Shown: piece by piece, positions 47,150-63,624 of the stretch
How the letters are laid out: each line of letters begins with the position of its first letter
Numbering within the stretch: position 1 is the stretch's first letter
Source of the DNA: Epithemia pelagica
Taxonomy: Eukaryota; Protista; Bacillariophyta
Reading direction: 5' to 3'
Assembly: GCA_946965045.2 (NCBI GenBank)
Contig: OX337234.1
Location: 3,224,001 to 3,288,000 of the forward strand
Length of the DNA stretch: 64,000 nt
The notes under the pieces: model-generated
Seen by the model: only the letters and a program-made list of their open reading frames with translations
The model's database searches: none
Told to the model about the DNA's origin: nothing
Position numbers and translations under genes: made by a program

Positions 47150-50100
47150 TCATTCTGCGTTTTGCTGTCGTGCCCTCTCTTTTTCCAACCGAATAATGTG
47201 CTCTTGAATGCACGGATGTTTAAATTTAGGACGGATAATGTGGGCACGGCAAATTGGGACACCGCAGCTTTCCTTCATTTCTTCGGATCCTTGCACCTTG
47301 CGCATACTCGTCTGAGACATACAGGATGGATGCCCGCAAATGGATCGCGTCTGAAACCCACAGATGACACACCGACGCCCCTTCGGCCGTTGCTTCCCAT
47401 CTGAATCGGTGGTCCTATCAGGATTGTAGATTGGCCGGTGGTCAGCGGTTGGATGCTGAGACGATGATGATCCACTCGATTGGCTGGTAGGAAGGCACCA
47501 TAACGAGAATGCTCCGCCAGCAGTTGAGACGCTCGTATCGTCTGCAGCAATGGACGAGCTGGAGCTGGTTAACGAGGACTCTGCAGGGGAAGTAACAGGG
47601 AATGGTGGGTTCATGATTCCTGCTGGTACACCTCCAGAACCAAGTTGAGCCATGAATGCATTGTGCATCATGCGAACATACTCAGCGATGCTGTCGTTGG
47701 TTCCTGTTCCATCACCTCCGCGACCCATGAAATTCGGCACAATGTTGGGACGGATGGTGGCATGCGGATCAATCTGTTTGTTGAATTTGTTGTGCGTGAG
47801 ATCCCAGGCGAGGCAATCTGCGAACTGTTCGATCCCACATGAGCCTGCAAATTGTCGTCCCAAGTGAAACTTGACTGCCGTGTGACAATCAACCACGGTG
47901 ACACCGATTATCGTTGAGACAAGCCGGAACCACGGGTTCGGCGTCTTCCAAAGCATCTCCAACCGCAGAATGCCTTGCCTGAAATGGTTGTGTACGTCGA
48001 TGATGTTTGAAACCCCAAAGTACACGGACAGGCATTTCGGACGGAGCACTCGTCGCTCCCGCACGTTTCCGTGCTCGTCGGCGAACCTGGCGATGTAGGG
48101 GTAGCCAGGTTCGGTTGTCTCCGCATTCTTGGACATCGCAAAGGTAAGCGTTTTCCGCGAATTGTATTTGTATCCAATGGCCACCAGGTCAACGTTGGTA
48201 CCTGGGGCCTTGCATTCCAATACTAGGTAGGCTCCAGATGGATACCCTTCCATCTCTTTCTGAAGTTCCTCCTGTGGAAACCAACCTGTGTTGGTTTTGA
48301 TCGCACAGATAACTTCGGGTGCATTGTTGTTTTGTCCAAGCTCTTTGTCAACCGCCACGAAGTAGGAGCGACGGTCTCGAGCTGTTGGTTGCCTTGGTTT
48401 CTGGTGCAGGCACTTCATTGCCTCAACCATTTTCACGCTACCAAACCACGAGTCTGCACAAATCAGGGACCGCATGTTGCCCTCATTCTGGGCTTGTACA
48501 CGCTCGATGATTGACTGTCCCGAAAACTGAATTCCCTCCACCAACCGAAGCGACGTACCAGCTGTGACCCCCAGGTCAGGAACAAACTTCTTGAGCTTCA
48601 TGGGAATCTGTCCTTCCTGTATTTCAAGGAAGACGAGGCAGCCTGTCTTAGTGTCCGCCGAAGCCTGTTTAGACACGTAGCCAAGAAACACCCAACAAAC
48701 AAGTAACAATCAACTGGATGAGTTCGAAGCACCAACGCAAGAACTGCAAAAGCACCAACTTACCTTCATTTCTGTACCTAGCGGTTTTGGTTTTCGCTGG
48801 ATATATGAAAGATGGGGGAGGGTGGACGATTGAGTTGTTCGCGGTTGGAACGGGCTCATGATCTCGTCTAACGTCACCGTTGACGAGGTTGCAACTGTTT
48901 GATGGCGATTTTCGTTGAAGCCATCAATTAAGGGCTGGATCTTGTTCCAAGGGTTGCCTGAGTTCTCGCCCTCAAATGCCCGGTGGACGATCTCTTTGAT
49001 GTCAAAGAACCGAGTCTTTGACATCACGTCCATTCCACCTTTGGACACATTGACGGACGGTGAGAACTTGCGATACGCAGGCGCGTCATCAAACAGTTGG
49101 ATGCCACCTTTGTGACAAGGGGAAGCTCCAATGATGATGCCCCAAAAGGCCCACCACTCGAACTCGGACACGGACCGGAGATGGCGGCTTCGCAACCTTC
49201 CCTCGTTTCGCTCATCAATCGCTTGGTTCAGTTTGTTGAGTTGTTGTCGCCAACTCCCTTTTGAGACATGATACAGACTGTTAGTCGACAAGAATCCAAA
49301 GCAATCCCCAGGACACTTAGCAATCAAACACTTACCGGGCCACAAGTGAAGGAGAAGGCGCATGAATGGGAAGTCGTACTGCTCATTGTCGATGGACAAG
49401 TTTGCAGCCGAAAAGGATTGTTGAAAATCAAATCCAATGACTCCCACGTCCTGGAATTCTTCAACCGGATTGTCAGGCTTGGTGTCGCCATCAACGATTT
49501 GCCACGTAAATGCTCGGTTGTCATGTATCAAACGGATTTGGTTCCCCCCTGAAAGTGCTTGCTCGACGTGGTTCTCGCCATCAAACTGGACATTCCACAG
49601 AGGGTTTCCATGCACACTATCCGGATGTTTCCCCACAACAACACCATAATGCCGATTGATGGTGGATCCATTGACTTTTTTGTATACCAGATCACCAATC
49701 TCAATTCCGTTTCGTTTTGGAGCTTCGAGGTGAACCTTCCAATTTTCGTCGACAAGTTGTTTCTTCCTTGCAACATATTTCTGATGCTTGACCCGGTACA
49801 CGTCTCTGCGTTCAAGCTCATGAGCGAGTGCAGCACTGTTCGGGTCAATGGCATCTTCGTCGTCCGCAAAGAAATACGGGAAATCTTCCATCCCAGTAAA
49901 GTAATCGTCCATGGACACTTCAGAGACGTCATCGTTGTCAACATGGATACCACCGGGAAGAAGCTGCGGAGGACCAGTGTTAGTGCTGTTCTGCTGCTGG
50001 TTCTCATTTTCCATTCTTGGCACGTGAATGTTTTCACTGCTGATTGATGAGGAATCCTCCATCAGCGCCTGTGCAATCTGTGCAGCTGCTTGTTGCAGAG

Positions 50101-50719
50101 GAGGAGACGTGGGTGTGCTGATTTGTTGGTTTGTTGTTTGTTGTCGGTTTGTTGTTTGTTCAGTGGCCGTTGTTTGTTCGGTTCTTGTCTCGTGCTGATT
50201 GTTTGTTGCTCGTTCGTCGACAAGCACTTCAACTTGTTCATTGCTGCCACCTTCATTCATGACCAGCACAACATCCTCTTGCTCCACGTCCGGTTGCGCT
50301 ACCGCCTGCTGTTGCTGCTGCTGTCCCTGCTCGTCACCACCACGGACCACAACTTCCACCTCCTCATTCCCATCACCACTTGCTTCTTCGACAAGCACCT
50401 GCTCTTGAGTGCTGGCGTTGTTTGCCACGGCACCTCCACCAGAAGACGAGGCAGCTGTTGAACTTGCATTAGTAGTACCACGCGCAGCATACCTTGGTCC
50501 ACCATTGTCTCCAGGAAATGCCTCGCCTTGCAGTGGCTTCCTTAGCTGGTAAGAAGTCTTTTTCATCAGCTCGCCCGTTCTCGTTCCATTGCTCCTGTTG
50601 AGCCGTTCCACTTCCCAGGACCTGCTTCCAAGGGCTCGTACAATCAATACAGGCTCCTCAGGTTTGCTGCCCTTAACAAAAGCCCTGGACCCTGGACCTA
50701 AGCGACTTAATGCAGGCAT
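47150..50719 (-). CDS. piggyBac-family (PGBD/DDE_Tnp_1_7-like) transposase, 3 exons (50719-49336, 49257-48764, 48664-47150), about 1130 aa, apparently intact
   Basis: Motifs TLDEIMSPF...RKPKPLGTEMK, ADSWFGSV, IDVHNHFRQG and a C-terminal Cys-rich CVIC...CGHPSC. GT-AG introns at 49335-49258 (78 bp) and 48763-48665 (99 bp) give a 3393-nt open frame. Confidence 0.88.
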
Positions 50720-51190
50720 TGTTGTTGTTGTTTCTGCCACTTTGATTGTCGTAGAAGTTGGTGTTTGTCTTGCCTGTTTGTGATCTCTACCACCCCCGTC
50801 GTTATTTGTCGTCGTCGTCTTCTTCGCTGCTGCAACCAAAAAATAGAAGCTTTGTGCAATGATCATTGCACAAAGCTTGTATTGCTTGGGTGCAGCAGGC
50901 TTGGATCGCATCAAACAGTCCCGAGGGGGACTGTTCGAAAGGCGGTCATCGTCGTACAATTTTGTTGAGATCTTCAGGTGGTGCAGAAAGAACACACATG
51001 AAATTTCGTGCCGCGGGTTCCGAATTGACGCGCCGGAGCGGTGCGCAGCGCGCATCTATCTATCTATATGCCCATCCAGGACATGTTCTGGAAGTCGACC
51101 ATGGCACAAAATGGCGCAGAAAGTATGTCTAAAATATCTGGACATCCGTCCATGGTCGTAGGACTGTCATAGGACCTTCCGCAGCACTGT

Positions 51191-51249
51191 CCCCACATGT
51201 CCCCACATGTCCCCACATGTCCCCACATGTCCCCACATGTCCCCACATG
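51191..51249 (+). repeat. Subterminal tandem repeat (CCCCACATGT)x6
   Basis: Read directly; lies 27 bp inside the right TIR. Confidence 0.95.
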
Positions 51250-52744
51250 CCTAAAATCGAGCACAACCCCCGAAAGGAGGCGCTCATATGACCTAGATAT
51301 GTCATATATGGGTGTGATGGGGTATCAAATGTTGACAGAGGATGTCTTAAAGATTAACTTTGGACATCCACATGTTGTCGTAGGCCTAATATTGGTCATG
51401 TTCTATCTAGTTGAAATGGTGTACCCAAAGAGCGCGCCAAGGGTGTAATGGGTACACACTGGGACGAGGCACTAGCGATAATACATACGTACTTGTCAGG
51501 ATGAAGAACTCTATCTTGTACCCGTGCCCCATGTCCATGTACCTTTTTGGTCTTGGTCCTGCCGGGTTGCTGGCTTCGCAGCCCCTGTTCCTGTTGTGGT
51601 TGTGGTCTCACAATTTGCGAGAATCCGAAATGAGGAGCGTAGAGCGTAGAGGACTCTGTTTCACAGTTTCTGCCCAACCCAGGCAATAGATTTGAATTTG
51701 TTGTTATGACCAGTGAAGGAAGCCCAGTACGGAACAAAAGCCCTTAGACGGAGTGAGCCCACACTGCATCTGTTTACAATACGGATACTGGCATGGCGTG
51801 TCCGCAACACACCAATTGACTGAACCTTCACAGACAAGTCCAGAGTCCAGAGAGGTTGGTTGCTGACAAGAGATGGCACAACAAAATTATCACATCGATC
51901 ATCGATCATGAGTCATTTTCGTGATCGAATCTTCGTGATGTACAGGTTTGCGGTGCTTGAATCACACCGTGACACAAGTAGTTTCTGTGTGCTTCACTTC
52001 CAGCGATGGAGTCAAAGATGTTTCTCTACCAAAAAGTGTGGCAAGCTACCGTGAAAATGATTGGTCCAAGTTGGTTGATGAGCTCCCTACCTCTAGAGTG
52101 ATTCTAGAGAGATTCTAAAAGTCGAGGCAAGAATAAAAGTTGTGGCCGCGTTGAAAGGAAGTACCTAGGAGTCTAGGAGTACTCCTATCGGAGTTATTAC
52201 GATCACAGGCCATTTACTATCCTCTCTCCGATTCTTATTCTTGGTGATTGGAATTTGGAGAATGGTGGGACTATTGACTATTTCCTATTATTTCCTCCTA
52301 TCTCTAGAGGAGTCTATGATGGAATAATAGGCTCTGTATCGGTGACCACCTCTAAATCGTCTGACAGTCGTCCTTCCCCAAGTCTGTCTTTCGCACCAAA
52401 TTTCCTTTCCCACAAGAGGAAAAATTTCATCGAGTGTTGGCTTGGCTGGCGTCCCCATTTTTCCTCACCACCAACTGCCACTCCAAACTTCCCACCCACC
52501 AAAAATTGAATGGGTGCAGTGCAGCATAACAATGGACAATGGACAGTTTTGTCGATCTTGTTGCTAAAACAGTCTTGTAAGATAAGTCTTTTGGAATGAT
52601 CGAATATTTGAATAGCTTTGCATAACGCTCAAAGGCACTCATTGCTCTACTTGCAAGGGCAATCTCTTTCCAGCAACTCTTTTTTCATTGACTTTGAATT
52701 TGTGTTGGCTTCAACAAGCAACTCATTCGAAGGATCATTTGGTT

Positions 52745-54630
52745 GTTGCTTTTTGCTTGATTCTGTCAGATCCTTGTCTCAAAGGACTCTATACTAGTCC
52801 ATTGGGACAGTATATTGGGTCCGAACAGTGATTCTCGGCTGAAAAATTTTCTCGTCCTCTTTTGGGTTGCAGCTGCCATCTGGACCAGTGGGCACCATTG
52901 ACTGAGGTAAATTGTTGATTTCTGGTGATTGGTTGCTTGACCTGGCTTGATCCTCATCTCAAAGGACCCTATACTAGTCTATTGGGACAGTATATTGGGT
53001 CCGAACAGTGACTCTCGGCTGAAAAATTTTCTCGTCCTCTTTTGGGTTGCAGCTGCCATCTGGACCAGTGGGCACCATTGACTGAGGTAAATTGTTGATT
53101 TCTGGTGATTGGTTGCTTGATTCTGTCAGATCCTTGTCTCAAAGGACTCTATACTAGTCTATTGGGACAGTATATTGGGTCCGAACAGTGATTCTCGGCT
53201 GAAAAATTTTCTCGTCCTCTTTTGGGTTGCAGCTGCCATCTGGACCAGTGGGCACCATTGACTGAGGTAAATTGTTGATTTCTGGTGATTGGTTGCTTGA
53301 TCTGGCTTGATCCTCATCTCAAAGGACCCTATACTAGTCTATTGGGACAGTATATTGGGTCCGAATAGTGACTCTCGGCTGAAAAATTTTCTCGTCCTCT
53401 TTTGGGTTGCAGCTGCCATCTGGACCAGTGGGCACCATTGACTGAGGTTGATTGTTGATTTCTGGTGATTGGTTGCTTAATCTGGCTTGATCCTTATCTC
53501 AAAGGACCCTATGCTAGTCTATTGGGACAGTATATTGGGTCCGAACAGTGACTCTCGGCTGAAAAATTTTCTCGTCCTCTTTTGGGTTGCAGCTGCCATC
53601 TGGACCAGTGGGCACCATTGACTTAGGTTGATTGTTGATTTCTGGTGATTGGTTGCTTGACCTGGCTTGATCCTCATCTCAAAAGACCCTATACTAGTCT
53701 TTTGGGACAGTATATTGGGTCCGAATAGTGACTCTCGGCTGAAAAATTTTCTCGTCCTCTTTTGGGTTGCAGCTGCCATCTGGACCAGTGGGCACCATTG
53801 ACTGAGGTAAATTGTTGATTTCTGGTGACTGGTTGCTTGACCTGGCTTGATCCTCATCTCAAAGGACCCTATACTAGTCTATTGGGACAATATATTGGGT
53901 CCGAACAGTGACTCTTGGCTGAAAAATTTTCTCGTCCTCTTTTGGGTTACAGCTGCCATCTGGACCAGTGGGCACCATTGACTGAGGTTGATTGTTGATT
54001 TCTGGTGATTGGTTGCTTGATTCTGTCAGATCCTCATCTCAAAGGACCCTATACTAGTCTATTGGGACAGTATATTGGGTCCGAACAGTGACTCTCGGCT
54101 GAAAAATTTTCTCGTCCTCTTTCTGGACCAGTGGGCACCATTGACTGAGGTTGATTGTTGATTTCTGGTGATTGGTTGCTTGATCTGGCTTGATCCTCAT
54201 CTCAAAGGACCCTATACTAGTCTATTGGGACAGTATATTGGGTCCGAATAGTGACTCTCGGCTGAAAAATTTTCTCGTCCTCTTTTGGGTTGCAGCTGCC
54301 ATCTGGACCAGTGGGCACCATTGACTGAGGTTGATTGTTGATTTCTGGTGATTGGTTGCTTGACCTGGCTTGATCCTCATCTCAAAGGACCCTATACTAG
54401 TCTATTGGGACAATATATTGGGTCCGAATAGTGACTCTCGGCTGAAAAATTTTCTCATCCTCTTTTGGGTTGCAGCTGCCATCTGGACCAGTGGGCACCA
54501 TTGACTAAGGTTGACTGAGGTTGATTGTTGATTTCTGGTGATTGGTTGCTTGGCCTGGCTCGATCCTCATTTCAAAGGACCCTATACTAGTCCATTGGGA
54601 CAGTATATTGGGTCCGAACAGTGACTTCTC
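52745..54630 (+). repeat. 180-bp tandem array, about 10.5 copies
   Basis: The marker ATTGGGAC (one copy TTTGGGAC) recurs at 52801, 52981, 53161, 53341, 53521, 53701, 53881, 54061, 54224 (17-bp deletion), 54404 and 54594 (10-bp insertion). Confidence 0.97.
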
Positions 54631-54633
54631 GAA

Positions 54634-56886
54634 ATGGATCGATTACTCGTTGATGAGGGTCGTTGTCGGAAGGTATCTGGTCTTCTCCGTGTTATTGCTG
54701 ATCTACTTGATGGAGACACAAGTTGGTCGAGTGTTGATAAGGTTCCTGTCGAGACCCAGTCGGTTCCACGAGACATAAGTACTTCCACATTGCGTGAGAT
54801 TATTGATGCAGAACGTCAGCCTAAGCACGTTTCCAAGAAGCACAAGATGGATCAGAAAGCATCAGTGAAGTATAATATGGCTCTTCCATTCCTTTTTGAA
54901 ATTCCATCAAAAAAGTGGAAGGATGTTCCCAGATCGCTACAAAAGCAGATGATGTCCGAAGGTCCTTTTTTCCATGCCAGATTGGACTACATGAGTTCCA
55001 TTGTTTCCATTTACCAACCATTGGATGAAGTCACAGTCTGCACAGTGGCCAAATCACTTCACATTCCGCATGGGCATTTCACTGCAAATGCACCTGATTT
55101 CAAGTTCCCAGAAGAATGTATCATCCCCGTCCATTCAGTTTTTCCAAAGCAAGATTCTTTCCCACCCAATTCAGCCGACTTCCAATTTATTGAAACACGG
55201 ATCATAGAGGAGATTGGTATACCATGGCAGGATCTTTCTTCTCTGTTACTTCCGCAGAAAGAAGGGATGGTTAGTGACAGATCAACGCATATGCCACGAC
55301 AACATCTCTGGCAAGATGCCGGGTTTGGTGGTGGTCGTGCCTTTTCTCGTGATAAGGCCAATCACAGACTGTCACGTCCTTCGATGTTGGATGGAACAAT
55401 GGACCCTATAATGGTCAAGGTACTTTGTACAATGACAAAAATGATCAAACAAAACTGTCCTCATGTTTGGCATGGTCGTTCGACCCAGCGACTGGAAAGG
55501 TATGCAAAGCGAATCGATAAGGAGAATGTAATTGAATACATTTGGATAGCTGCGACAGACGTAAATTCAGCAGAAGTTGGACAATGTGGCTTTCACGATG
55601 ATGATCTCAATGATCCTAATTTTCCAGAGGTTGTGATTCTTTCCAAGGTTGTTCCATGTGGTGTGCGTTCTTTGAGAATTTCAGTAATTGCCGCTACAAG
55701 GAAGTCCATATTGGATGCAGAGCGCAGGGAGAACGAAGACATTGGTCCGTCTCTCCGATTCCTATTGCACAGGTATGCATCTATTGACGATGCAAGAAAA
55801 AACACTGGCCCATTAACATTTGCAACGACGACCAAGAGTGATGGTGCTTGGTGCGGAATTGGTTACAGTCTGTATCCATGTCATTTAGAGGCGTCCATCT
55901 ATGTGTCTCCCATTATTCACTACAGTTTGCGAATGATCAAACAATTCCATCTTGATTTTGTGGAGGTCATATGCATCTTCCGGTCTTTTGCATTGTGTTC
56001 CTTCACAACGTTCTTTGCTACCGCTGCGCTTATTGAAGTATTACAGCGACCTGTGCTGAAGCAGACCGGATTGGAATTTGGATACAACCTATTGGAAAGA
56101 GTTCACGAGATATATGGTTCGTATAAAAATTCAAAGAAACCAATCCCTGGGACACGATTTACAACAAGTTCTGAAACAAATCTACCATCCTTCGAGCAGT
56201 TTAAGGAACAGATACAGCATATGGTATTTGTCTGCATTCAATCATTCGGATATGACGATGCACCAACGAACAAGAAAACAAGGGCAAACTTATACAACAT
56301 GACTATGAAGGGATTGAAGGGAAGTTTGCCTTCATGTGGTGTCGTGGGAACTAATCATCTGATAAATGCAATGTCCATTGTTGGGTGTGTCCCGTTGTGG
56401 TATTCTTTCGAAATACAAGGTACTCATGAATCATGTGGTTTTCAATTCTTGAGCCGTGAATATGGTTTGAGGAAAGGGGAACAAGGGACAAAACAACTGC
56501 TTGATTCTTTCACAAAGGCCGTTGAAGATGTGTCAGGGAAATTTTGTTCCCGAAGAAATGCAGAGAGTATTGTGTGCAACATATTTCAAGCCCAACACAA
56601 AGAAGCACAAAGATTCACTGATCTTGTATGGGCCGATCAAATTGTGTACGAGCCCACAAAGAGTGGTGTTGTGTTATGGAAGAAAAATGGCATGTCTGTT
56701 TACACCGTTGGACCTCTAGTTGTACGATGGCCCTATGATGCGACATTCAAATTGGGACATGAAATTTACATGAAGCATGAGGCTGTGATATCAAAAGGAA
56801 TCAAACATGCCCGTATTGATGAAAAATTCGAACACTCTACCAGAACCAACTATTTATCGGATTCTATTCAAGAAGCACTCAACTAA
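54634..56886 (+). CDS. 750-aa cargo protein with TET/JBP-like (HxD...RxS) and HhH-like motifs
   Basis: Intact ORF inside the MULE. Motifs CGFHDDDLND...RISVIAATRKSI and GLKGSLPSCGVVGTNHLI...AESIVC. The family call is by eye only. Confidence 0.75.
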   Translation: MDRLLVDEGRCRKVSGLLRVIADLLDGDTSWSSVDKVPVETQSVPRDISTSTLREIIDAERQPKHVSKKHKMDQKASVKYNMALPFLFEIPSKKWKDVPRSLQKQMMSEGPFFHARLDYMSSIVSIYQPLDEVTVCTVAKSLHIPHGHFTANAPDFKFPEECIIPVHSVFPKQDSFPPNSADFQFIETRIIEEIGIPWQDLSSLLLPQKEGMVSDRSTHMPRQHLWQDAGFGGGRAFSRDKANHRLSRPSMLDGTMDPIMVKVLCTMTKMIKQNCPHVWHGRSTQRLERYAKRIDKENVIEYIWIAATDVNSAEVGQCGFHDDDLNDPNFPEVVILSKVVPCGVRSLRISVIAATRKSILDAERRENEDIGPSLRFLLHRYASIDDARKNTGPLTFATTTKSDGAWCGIGYSLYPCHLEASIYVSPIIHYSLRMIKQFHLDFVEVICIFRSFALCSFTTFFATAALIEVLQRPVLKQTGLEFGYNLLERVHEIYGSYKNSKKPIPGTRFTTSSETNLPSFEQFKEQIQHMVFVCIQSFGYDDAPTNKKTRANLYNMTMKGLKGSLPSCGVVGTNHLINAMSIVGCVPLWYSFEIQGTHESCGFQFLSREYGLRKGEQGTKQLLDSFTKAVEDVSGKFCSRRNAESIVCNIFQAQHKEAQRFTDLVWADQIVYEPTKSGVVLWKKNGMSVYTVGPLVVRWPYDATFKLGHEIYMKHEAVISKGIKHARIDEKFEHSTRTNYLSDSIQEALN

Positions 56887-56952
56887 TAAAATAATGAAAA
56901 TGTCCAATTGCCTTGTCATCAGACTCCAATGGACAAAACTCAGCTTGCCCAT

Positions 56953-57813
56953 GACCAGTCCAAAGAACGATCCCTCCAATGGCCCAAACAAGGTGCCGAC
57001 TGTCAACCTCAACAAATGAACCATCTTGTGCTCCACTCAGTTTGCCGACGACCAGTCCAAAGAACGATCCCTCCAATGGCCCAAACAAGGTGCCGACTGT
57101 CAACCCCAACAAATGAACCATCTTGTGCTCCACTCAGTTCGCAGACAACCAGTCCAAAGAACGATCCCTCCAATGGCCCAAACAAGGTGTCGACTGTCAA
57201 CCCCAACAAATGAACCATCTTGTGCTCCACTCAGTTTGCCGACGACCAGTCCAAAGAACGATCCCTCCAATGGCCCAAACAAGGTGCCGACTGACAACCC
57301 CAACAAATGAACCATCTTGTGCTCCACTCAGTTTGCCGACGACCTGTCCAACGAACGATCCCTCCAATGGCCCAAACAAGGTGCCGACTGTCAACCCCAA
57401 CAAATGAACCATCTTGTGCTCCACTCAGTTTGCCGACGACCAGTCCAAAGAATGATCCCTCCAATGGCCAAAACAAGGTGCCGACTGTCAACCTCAACAA
57501 ATGAACCATATTGTGCTCCACTCAGTTTGCCGACGACCAGTCCAAAGAATGATCCCTCCAATGGCCCAAACAAGGTGCCGACTGATAACCCCAACAAATG
57601 AACCATCTTGTGCTCCACTCAGTTTGCCGACGACCAGTCCAAAGAATGATCCCTCTATTGGCCCAAACAAGGTGCCGATTGATAACCCCAACAAATGAAC
57701 CATCTTGTGCTCCACTCAGTTTGCCGACGACCAGTCCAAAGAACGATCCCTCCAATGGCCCAAACAAGGTGCCGACTGTCAACCCCAACAAATGAACCAT
57801 CTTGTGCTCCACT
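56953..57813 (+). repeat. 97-bp tandem array, about 8.9 copies
   Basis: AAATGAACCAT recurs every 97 bp from 57014 to 57790, between the two convergent stop codons. Confidence 0.97.
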
Positions 57814-60800
57814 ATTTTGGCAGTAGTCGGTTTCTTCTGTATGTATTTTGTGTTGACTGTTTTGCCGTGTCAAATGGAACGTTAGAGGACAAAAAAGGCT
57901 CGTTGATATCATTCTCATTTCTGTCCCGATGACACATATTCCTTTGTTGTTGAGAAAGGCGCTTGCTTTGCCATGTTCTTGCATCATGCAACACTTGCAG
58001 AAGATGTTTTCGTGAGAGCTGACAATTGAACAACGGCAACATATCCTTTAACATTGTCAAGAGCTGTCCATGTGTGACGTCTTTATTTTCAGGAAAATCA
58101 AACTGGAAGTTTGATGTCATTTCCATAGATTCTTGAGTAAACGTGCAATTGTCCTCAGCGTCGGGGATCACTGAGGAATCCCAGTCTTCACATGTGTTTT
58201 CACCAGGCCTGACTTCATTAATTTCCTTGTGCAATGCCTCTCGAAAGTGCTTTGGGTATTCGTCAATCTCATAGTTCCAACAAAGAGGGACAGGAGAATT
58301 AATGACTTGATACATCTGGTCGATTGTGTACTCTGTACCAGACCATATATATGGGTAAGGACCGCTATAGCTGCATGTATCAGTCTTCATTCGTATGCCC
58401 TCATGATCTGAGTCATGTCCACGTAAGTACGATTCTGTAATGGAGGGATATTCAGAGACAAATGCATAATATGAGTACCCCATTTGCCATCGAACTGAGA
58501 TGTCTGACAAATCATATGCATCTTCAACACAGAACAAATGGCGGCACGGTATTCCATTTTGCTGTTTGTATCCACACTCGCAACACAAGATATCCTGTTT
58601 ATTTAATTCCATACGCCAAGCTGTCTTGAAAGAGGGAGGAGCCATTCCAGCCACTGTTCTAGTTTTGAATTCTGAAGATGGTGACACAGAATTTCTGAGA
58701 ATGTACCATACTTTCTCTGAATGACGGAGAACAGTATACTTGTTTCGTTGTGAATATTGCTGTATAAGCATATGACGTGCCATGTTGGATAATTTTTGAA
58801 GAATATCTACGTTGTGACATGAACCTTCCTTGATGAAAAGTGGAGTTGCCACCATCTGGCGAAGAGCTGCACAGCGTCGATCTTTTGCAGACAAACTTGA
58901 ATGGGTGAACATAGCATTTGCAGATGATGCCATTGACATGTTTGGACGTGTTGAAACATCGGAATGTTTACATGATCTATTCATGGCTTCACCAGAATTG
59001 TTCATGTACTTGTCAAAACACCGATGGAACCTCTTTTGCCAAAATGCAAAGGTGTTTTCATTTGGAAGAATTTTTTCTGCGAGCCACTTTCCGAGGAGAG
59101 CCAGACCCTCTGGTGATATTGAATGACACAATTCGTCCGATTCAATCTTCTTAAGCAAAAGATCTTTGGAGAGACTAAATTGTATCTCGGATGAACATGA
59201 GGATCCGTCACCCCATGTATAAATCCATGTCCGAATAGCTTGGAGAACAAAGAGACCATGTGGCGAACATGTAATTGAGTTTGGGATAGTTCTTTCAAAA
59301 GTCTTTTGGACAATATGGTACATACACCGCCCCCTGAAGGCATTCGTCAGATAATGGAGGCAGGACTCTTCAACTGCTTCGAACTCTTGGGCATCACCAT
59401 CAGTGATTACCAGTTTCACACGTTTTAGATTGGCTTCTCCAAGAAGACACGGCAGGCACTTGAGGAAAACCCAACGGTAAAATGCACTGGTCTCATTCGG
59501 CATAAATATTCGAGCAATCACAAATGCCTTCCCTGACTGATCTCTGCCACAAATCATGAGGAGTGGACGAGCTTTGTTGTTGGTTTTATGGGTGGAATCG
59601 ATGAATAGAACTTCGGGGAATCTTTGGAATTGGGCAAAGGCTTGAGCATCAACCCACCCTGCCCCCAGGAGAATTCTATGACTTTCGAGATCAATCAATG
59701 AATCATTATGAATTTCTCGAGCCATGTTCAATGTCTGATTGAGTGCATCGTTGTCCAAAGGGAGCTCTTGTGATTGTTCTACACTTTGAGCTGTTCTATA
59801 GGTATTCTCGAGAGTATCCACATATTCCATGTTTTCCTCTACTTTGTCAAGAGGAATTCTTCCAGTTTGTCCAGGCCTTCCTTTGGGATCTGCTGCATGC
59901 TTTCGTTACCAGTGCACCATCTGGGAAGCAGTGGACTCACGTTGCTCATTGTTTGTTAGGAAGTCAGGCTCCATTCGAATTCTTTGTATTGATCCACGGG
60001 ATATCAGCTCACTTTGATTTTCTAAGACAATGCATCTTAGAGAGCCATTGCCCACAGAAACTTTAGCACCACTGGTAATGAGCTTGTATGTGGAGTCGGA
60101 AATGTGGCGTTTAGCAAAACACAGATCACCTTTTTGTGGTTTGGGGTGGAAAGAATGAAGTCGATGTCCACACCCTTGTTTGAGGTATATGTACCCGTCA
60201 GGACCCTCTTTCACACCAAGACGCAGTGCAACTTTGCATGTTTCTTCAGCATGAACAGGTCGCATTGTCGAAGTTCCCCGAACAGATGATTTCCCACCAC
60301 AACGGTTCATGCTCCGATCACGGTGGTATCGGTATGGTCGTATACCAAGACGGACACCGTCATTGTCGAAAGTTTTGTCTGATAGAATGTTGTCTGGCTG
60401 TGCCGTATCATTGTTGTCCATCGGGCTTCCATTTGGTTGGTCGGGGATGTTGGTAGATGGGATGACTTTCGAACGTCGGGGACCATGTTTCCTACAACGG
60501 AAACAAGAGAGAACATGCGCTTGGCTGCGATAGACAAGGTTAGTTCCTGATTTGATACCCTCAATCTTTAGAGCTGTGCACAGTCTCTTAATGCCGTCAT
60601 CATTCGGAGGATATTTCTTTCTGTCAAAGATAACCAAATGTGGCAGTTCTTCAGTACTTTTTGATTTGGATGATTGTCGTCGAAAATGGTAGTGGTTTTT
60701 ATCAGTGAATTGAAACAGATCTATTGCTTGATTGTCAAAGTTTTCAAGGTCTGTGAAATAAAGTTCGGCTTGCCAGTTGAACTGACGATGGATGGCATTA

Positions 60801-60856
60801 TCAATATCAGCTTGCGCATCTTGAGCTGTTCCAATTGGAACAGTTGTCATGGTCAT
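57812..60856 (-). pseudogene. MULE transposase with SWIM zinc finger, one in-frame TAA at 59908-59906
   Basis: Motifs PEVLFIDSTHKTN, LVITDGDAQE, RGRCMYH and SWIM CCECGYKQQNGIPCRH. ORFs 59906-60856 and 57812-59830 are in the same frame with 25 sense codons between them. Confidence 0.88.
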
Positions 60857-61611
60857 CTTATAGTTGATCGAAAGGATCTGGATGCCATATTTGAAAGAGT
60901 TGGAGAAAGGCGGTTGGACAGTTTCCGAGTCGGGCGAGGCGCAAATGCCGACGAAGGAGATACCATGCCGGCGTGAAGAATAGGAAATTGACCAAAAAAT
61001 TTGTATGACAAAAGGGAAAAAAACCAGGTCAGAGAAGAATTCGGTGAACGACTGGCAGACGATTTAGAGGTGGTCACCGATACGGAGGGAAGATCTTCTG
61101 TCTTCCTAGCTCTTTCAGGGACCAAGAACAAAGAATAAAGTACGGGTGAGCATGACACTTATATTTTACTGGTTGGTGATTCATCAGTCGTCAATAACCA
61201 GCGTTGAAGTACGAGATGTCTTGGCAGGGAATTTAGGGGCGGCTCTGACTCATTGTTGTACATACTGACGCCCGACAAGACAATTGCCCTCCTCGTCAAT
61301 CTACCCTCCGCGCCGGGCGGTCCCTCCTTGACTCGACACCGGGAAGTATAAATACTACCACGCATCCCGAAACTTACATGGCGACGAAACTGACCTTTGC
61401 CAGTACCACGACAACGACAGGGCACCCGTGATGCTGGACTATGACCATTGACCAGCAGTACTACCATCAGGATGGAACAGCAAAAGAGCAGTGCAAACCA
61501 CAACAGCTCGGTCGAAGCAACTGTCACAATTTGTCTCGTGGCAGAAGTCCACACGTCCTACCAACCATTCACAAGACATCTCTTAAAGGACGAGTTCATT
61601 GTGTTTCCACC

Positions 61612-63624
<2,013 letters not shown>

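Follow-up and report, generated by a model that had tools for sequence, protein, structure and literature searches.

Genes for TET/JBP enzymes are known to ride on fungal DNA transposons of the KDZ, hAT, Harbinger, IS3EU, EnSpm, ESTA, Plavaka, and Helitron groups, for which an escape from methylation silencing has been proposed (Kojima, 2025; PMC12730594). A comparable arrangement, with the gene of a double-stranded beta-helix (DSBH) protein beside a transposase gene, is found on a Mutator-like element (MULE) in a 64,000-nt stretch of the diatom Epithemia pelagica (contig OX337234.1, forward-strand positions 3,224,001 to 3,288,000, referred to as the window), where an open reading frame (ORF) of 750 codons constitutes the accessory gene treated here. 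The system differs from the fungal ones in its diatom host, in its carrier, since MULEs are missing from the superfamilies named above, and in a DSBH domain which escapes the Pfam Tet_JBP model, does not contain the canonical distal His, and is fused to a domain resembling the phage amino acid:DNA transferases (AADTs). We regard the ORF as probably representing a long-kept accessory gene of the MULE, whose single polypeptide would combine TET/JBP-like and AADT-like folds and act on C5 of pyrimidines in DNA.

The same two folds are functionally linked in the hypermodification clusters of phages, in which TET-type 5-methylcytosine (5mC) dioxygenases (5mYOX/TET) or T-dioxygenases are associated with P-loop kinases and AADTs (PMC8256090, PMC13229309). 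The Glu-x-x-x-Cys box of the AADTs is conserved in both cases, but the phage enzymes are encoded by separate genes and depend on the P-loop kinase acting on 5-hydroxymethyl-deoxyuridine (5-hmdU), whereas the accessory gene codes for one eukaryotic polypeptide without a match to the Pfam ADDT model, and the element carries no kinase (PMC8989533, PMC8256090, PMC13229309, PMC13458397). Mutator-type elements are also known to carry accessory genes acting on their own epigenetic state, as represented by VANC of the Arabidopsis VANDAL MULEs and the SET-domain genes of Phytophthora MuDR, the only cargo for which MuDR is cited by Kojima (PMC12730594). However, these proteins are unrelated to the accessory protein; VANC does not represent such an enzyme fold, and no similarity in sequence or fold was found. 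Finally, CMD1 of Chlamydomonas is a TET homologue producing 5-glyceryl-methylcytosine (PMC7854593), but unlike the accessory protein it has a full 2-His-1-Asp site, contains no AADT-like domain, and is not borne by a transposon.

So far, fungi are the only organisms for which transposon-borne TET/JBP genes have been described, and Mutator elements are not among the carriers. The pathway link from TET to AADT has been known only between separate phage genes; the AADT-like fusion partner seems to be new. The accessory protein belongs to a fused, conserved, and Pfam-invisible family present in algal and eukaryotic metagenome sequences, which may point to a novel pyrimidine chemistry in eukaryotic DNA, leading either to a hypermodified base or to a repair-independent removal of 5mC. 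The family supplies a concrete protein to be expressed and assayed, as well as a natural test of DSBH oxygenase function without the canonical distal His.

The accessory gene and its protein family

The accessory gene was identified by ORF calling in the window as an uninterrupted reading frame on the forward strand (54634-56886) with an ATG start, located only 2 nt past the end of a 180-bp tandem array. Because the homology to its sister copy begins at about residue 84 and the model has low confidence over residues 1-80, the true start of the protein may be an internal Met. The gene is organized as follows.

54634-56886, forward strand: accessory gene, 750 aa; sister-copy homology from residue ~84, M72 being a possible real start
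54883-55749, forward strand: TET/JBP-like DSBH domain, predicted, aa 84-372, including the P-H146 motif
55585-55611, forward strand: C318xxH321xD323xxN326 motif inside the DSBH domain
55675-55707, forward strand: R348-x5-A354-x-R356-K-S358 motif inside the DSBH domain
55750-56613, forward strand: predicted AADT/aGPT-Pplase2-like helix-hairpin-helix (HhH) domain, aa ~373-660
56320-56364, forward strand: HhH-like hairpin, aa 563-577, inside the HhH domain
56563-56577, forward strand: E644-S-I-V-C648 box inside the HhH domain
56614-56763, forward strand: small C-terminal beta module, aa ~661-710, with six short strands and conserved D663 and Q669

With a limit of E <= 0.001, an exhaustive HMMER search yielded 164 representatives of the family, of which 19 fall below 1e-30, with identities typically amounting to 20-30% over residues ~84-710. 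Word-indexed protein searches recovered only 2-3 relatives even with an alignment, including P0002, which consists of 814 aa and is 63% identical. Both domains are spanned in all 36 of the 36 long members. All family members that were looked up are proteins without a name in assemblies of ENA, JGI, or Logan, and in several clusters of the family there are large numbers of nearly identical copies, both full and truncated, as is seen with transposon genes.

The ratio of non-synonymous to synonymous substitution rates (dN/dS) between the accessory ORF and P0002 is 0.12-0.21, and the gene is kept by the MULE lineage under purifying selection. Contigs from public DNA data carry the ORF with 8 substitutions, of which 5 are non-synonymous and none creates a stop. 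One of these lies at position 55543, where the contigs of three public DNA runs read C instead of T, replacing Trp by the family consensus Arg (W304R), so the window copy has acquired a derived change at conserved residue 304. Loose ends of DNA contigs show that the public runs containing the window copy also contain a P0002-like paralogue.

The N-terminal half

The N-terminal half of the protein is predicted to be a very divergent TET/JBP-type DSBH. An AlphaFold2 model built with 150 relatives reached a mean pLDDT of 86.8 and a pTM of 0.83, and a separate model of residues 84-372 a pLDDT of 86.1. In exhaustive comparisons with VIA-align, this half comes closest to the TET/JBP enzymes; its matches include TET2 (6.9/6.8), CcTet (6.6/6.8), FTO, and CMD1, followed by AlkB homologues, and 50 of the 50 matches listed for the N-domain model are 2-oxoglutarate/Fe oxygenases.

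The domain appears to keep the putative Fe-binding HxD motif, the base-contacting Asn, and a last-strand Arg-x5-aromatic-x-Arg-Lys-Ser box. The former two are located in the string FHDDDLND (residues 320-327, nt 55591-55614), the latter in RISVIAATRKSI (residues 348-359). In the family, these positions are near-invariant for H321 (84/85), D323 (83/86), N326 (80/83), R348 (72/80), and R356 (79/84), while Y354 is found in 51/85 members and replaced by Ala in the window copy. The last-strand consensus of the family, R-[IV]-S-[IV]-I-x-Y-x-R-K-S, corresponds to RISLVFYQHKS of TET2, and HxDxxN to HRDLHN. The parallel to TET had been drawn in the initial annotation from two TET2 strings, CAHAHRDLHN... 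and ...TRISLVFYQHKSM, both of which are indeed present in TET2 crystal constructs; TET2 in the PDB reads CAHAHRDLHN and TRISLVFYQHKS. The Asn three residues past the Asp is a base-contact residue in the known enzymes, corresponding to N1387 in TET2 and D234 in NgTet1, and the flipped base is stacked on and contacted by the aromatic residue together with the His that follows two residues after it (PMC4678852). The putative motifs agree with the TET pattern in their order and in their placement at the ends of strands.

TET2 has its distal Fe-binding His 15 residues ahead of the Arg (ELH-x14-R). The only other invariant His of the family besides H321 is H146, which lies within a P-H-[YG]-[QH] motif and represents a candidate substitute metal ligand. 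A further His in the motif PCH417xDP was considered as the missing distal ligand and rejected, as it is found in only 35/76 members (Asn in 31) and the motif is situated where the AADT-like half begins. The same motif was compared with the DLDP metal site of the AADTs, from which it is placed 6 residues off by hhalign, leaving their equivalence uncertain.

The C-terminal half

The C-terminal half is predicted to be an HhH domain of the phage AADT type, formerly called aGPT-Pplase clade 2, and appears to have kept the Glu-x-x-x-Cys box. The aGPT-Pplase group was reportedly defined by Iyer et al. in 2013, who may mention eukaryotic homologues. According to the AlphaFold2 model this half may adopt an all-alpha fold of the HhH type, for which VIA-align finds AADT/aGPT-Pplase2 as nearest relative, with further matches to the queuine-salvage enzyme DUF2419 (7.6), to AGOG (6.9), and then to other HhH glycosylases. 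As reference for a profile comparison, the family of phage M6 gp51, identified as Pfam ADDT protein, was collected and aligned. The hhalign comparison of the C-domain alignment with this AADT family results in an E value of 4.7e-4, a probability of 33%, and a score of 34.7, extending over 227 collinear columns and thus nearly the whole AADT domain. All controls stay below this score, with maxima of 19.6 for 40 column-shuffled and 25.8 for 40 block-shuffled profiles and a value of 14.6 for the reversed profile. The Pfam ADDT model (PF18724) itself matches neither the accessory protein nor any of 36 relatives.

In the profile alignment, E644-N-x-x-C648-K falls on E243-T-V-L-C247-K of gp51, and the box is highly conserved in the family (E644 in 91/100, N645 in 89/101, and C648 in 100/104 members). 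In the known AADTs the Cys is the nucleophile attacking C6 and the Glu holds a divalent metal together with a Thr, and mutation of either Cys or Glu abolishes the activity (PMC8989533, PMC13458397). The resemblance to AADT-type enzymes which had originally been seen in the string NAESIVC, located at residues 642-648, is supported. Both folds are predicted, the HxD and Arg motifs are conserved among the homologues, and all motifs quoted from the protein are found at their stated positions.

The 5-hmdU DNA kinase of phage M6, gp54 (L004:17273-18229), contains an E-x-x-x-C box (DIEHTLCEF) in its helical domain as well, which is placed on the ENxxCK motif of the family by hhalign. This suggests that the helical domain of the kinase and AADT may be paralogues.

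The stretch formerly called HhH-like (GSLPSCGVVGTNHLI, residues 563-577) is the one on which the LPGVGRKTANVVL hairpin of E. coli endonuclease III falls in an hhalign alignment with a score of 15.4. This bears on an alternative in which the protein would be a self-contained demethylase for base excision, its TET-like half oxidizing 5mC and an HhH glycosylase excising the oxidized base, as in the combination of animal TET and TDG. We consider this quite unlikely, since the alignment to endonuclease III (Nth) is at noise level and AADT is the best match by profile as well as by fold, with its Glu/Cys box conserved. Moreover, no conserved Asp or Glu occurs in the family about 20 residues past the hairpin, the site of the catalytic Asp of HhH-GPD enzymes.

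The element and its copies

The accessory gene is part of an element of ~8.76 kb. A 40-nt inverted repeat at 52332-52371 and 61048-61087 is 95% complementary, and the similarity to two other copies, L001 and L009, starts at 52328-52332 and ends at 61091-61094, which defines these positions as the termini. A clear flanking direct repeat corresponding to a target-site duplication of 8-11 bp was not found at the ends of either the window or the L001 copy. Between the terminal inverted repeats (TIRs), the order is 180-bp array, accessory gene (forward), 97-bp array, and transposase (reverse).

52328-52373, no strand: left TIR, defined by the inverted repeat and the start of L001/L009 similarity
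52769-54631, no strand: 180-bp tandem array, 10.4 copies with 93% matches; no counterpart in L001
56938-57813, no strand: tandem array of a 97-bp unit in 9 copies, separating the convergent genes; common to the L001 copy
57812-59830, reverse strand: C-terminal piece of the MULE transposase, 672 aa, DDE/RNaseH-like plus SWIM; 77% identical to the L001 transposase
59906-59908, reverse strand: in-frame TAA splitting the transposase; TTG in L001
59909-60856, reverse strand: N-terminal piece of the transposase, 316 aa, same frame; 74% identical to L001, dN/dS 0.17-0.21
61046-61091, no strand: right TIR, defined by the inverted repeat and the limit of similarity to other copies

For the convergent neighbour on the reverse strand, Pfam gives matches to the MULE domain (PF10551, E 4.6e-15), to a ZSWIM RNaseH-like domain (PF21056, 1.2e-10), and, weakly, to the SWIM finger. 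As first noted in the initial annotation, the accessory ORF is intact beside a stop-bearing transposase: its 750 codons are uninterrupted, and the neighbour contains one in-frame TAA. This stop is a lineage-specific nonsense change, as L001 has TTG at the respective codon and is otherwise collinear. A short intron at this site, suggested by a GTGAGT just upstream, was dropped because L001 reads through with TTG.

In the L001 transposase (L001:12921-15110), the frame is interrupted by a TAG of its own, and 69 nt are inserted at the junction matching the TAA of the window; both transposases are broken, though at different places. Also in L001 (10001-10440), the N-terminus of P0002 contains four tandem repeats of 30 aa, so that the upstream tandem array there enters the coding region.

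The accessory gene is paired with a MULE transposase in three close copies. P0002 shows the same convergent arrangement with a transposase 74-77% identical to that in the window, and the truncated copy P0007 directly adjoins a further MULE transposase of that assembly. The neighbours of more distant relatives include a PIF1 helicase (L002), a protein of 1132 aa that weakly matches the ZSWIM RNaseH-like domain (L006, E 0.003), and proteins of an unknown type; apart from the match in L006, the MULE profile did not find any of the neighbours of the distant homologues. The distant relatives adjoin other genes, and the expected linkage of the homologues to transposons is therefore shown for the close subfamily alone, with its three copies, and is not demonstrable for the distant homologues. 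As a separate observation, P0003 (31% identical) is encoded near the gene of a 1126-aa PIF1-type helicase in L002 (10618-13998), which may represent a Helitron-like context.

These data bear on the possibility that the ORF is a captured host gene or a decaying passenger without any role for the element. Such a state would agree with the broken transposase of the window copy, the truncated gene in L009, and several non-consensus residues in the window copy. However, gene order and arrays are kept across subfamilies of the element with no more than 63-77% identity between their proteins, the dN/dS values of 0.12-0.21 indicate constraint, and at the loci examined none of the family members lay in host sequence that was evidently non-repetitive, which makes this explanation highly improbable.

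The element also stands out by its base composition. The observed/expected ratio of CpG is 0.59 in the MULE (52328-61091) and 0.32 in its 180-bp array, compared to 0.86 in the whole window and 0.84-0.96 in the other transposons of the window (piggyBac-like and copia), and TpG/CpA is raised to 1.35 in the MULE. The low CpG content is possibly a scar of CpG methylation specific for the element and would fit the element as a methylation target.

Proposed activity and alternatives

In the reaction proposed here, the DSBH half would flip out a thymine or 5mC and oxidize its C5-methyl group in DNA. The AADT-like half may then attack C6 of the oxidized pyrimidine, and this attack would replace or remove the C5 substituent, leaving the mark altered or erased. 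Carried by a transposon, such an activity would most plausibly change the silencing marks on the element's own DNA. A more specific proposal, which we put forward only tentatively and consider rather doubtful, is a transposon-borne single-chain enzyme in which a non-canonical metal centre, formed by the HxD motif and the His from P-H-x-[HQ], would oxidize C5-methyl pyrimidines, followed by an attack of the AADT-type Cys on C6; this would either introduce a new adduct and yield a eukaryotic hypermodified thymine or cytosine, or remove the oxidized carbon and directly erase 5mC without base-excision repair, and thereby mark or unsilence the element's own DNA. The original claim of an undescribed MULE-encoded enzyme modifying DNA bases stands with regard to the predicted folds, the motifs, and the linkage in the close copies; catalysis, substrate (T or 5mC), product, and anti-silencing role of the protein are what we infer from these.

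Several observations weigh against the proposed reading. The core of the DSBH is abbreviated throughout the family, as had been cautioned from the window copy alone: H321 and R348 are 27 residues apart, only one beta-hairpin of 24 residues is found between D323 and R348, and a conserved His is present in this interval in none of the members. Strands IV-VII of the canonical DSBH must either be missing or be replaced by N-terminal strands. Foldseek searches with the whole model and the N-domain against the PDB, and also against BFVD, returned nothing significant. None of the 36 long members matches Pfam at E 0.01, and the protein and its domain segments give no Pfam hits even at E 10. PHROGs contains no match for either domain alignment, and sequence and profile searches of the PDB found none for the accessory protein. 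Moreover, AADTs need phosphorylated 5-phosphomethyl-dU, and a 5-hmdU kinase domain was found neither in the protein or the element nor in the neighbour genes of the homologues. At 26 highly conserved columns (at least 85% conserved in the relatives, the column of the start Met being left out), the window copy deviates at 5 and P0002 at 6, compared to a median of 1 in the other members. The deviations of the window copy include N645S, K649N, and the aromatic position Y354A, and P0002 carries C648S at the position of the presumed catalytic Cys. No RNA run containing the gene was found. Finally, the CpG ratio of 0.59 shows the element as apparently not shielded from methylation damage. The E-x-x-x-C box is partly eroded in the MULE-borne subfamily. 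In addition to these searches, the ESM Atlas contained no usable match by shape or by features, the latter giving only a weak lead to DUF7869 (0.89) for the C-terminal half.

Some of these features would suit a catalytically dead reader or adaptor, in which a degenerate TET-like pocket and the HhH domain bind DNA or modified bases and, without changing any base, aid transposition or recruit host factors like the MURB- or VANC-type accessory proteins. The strand with the distal His is absent in every member, the window copy has lost the stacking aromatic residue and P0002 the catalytic Cys, and no kinase partner is present. However, H321, D323, N326, R348, R356, E644, and C648 are 90-99% conserved among members sharing only ~20% identity, a pattern typically seen for catalytic residues and not for surfaces that only bind, and we regard a function restricted to binding as somewhat improbable.

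Neighbouring sequences

On one side of the MULE, a piggyBac-type DDE_Tnp_1_7 match (E 6.6e-7) is found on the reverse strand of the window (47150-51055) in a pair of adjoining ORFs, 519 and 781 aa long, and a 10-bp microsatellite, TGTCCCCACA x6, is located next to them at 51188-51249. On the other side, a flanking gene on the forward strand (61441-63624) encodes a protein of 727 aa with weak leucine-rich-repeat matches and a polyglutamine tract of ~45 residues derived from (CAA)n.

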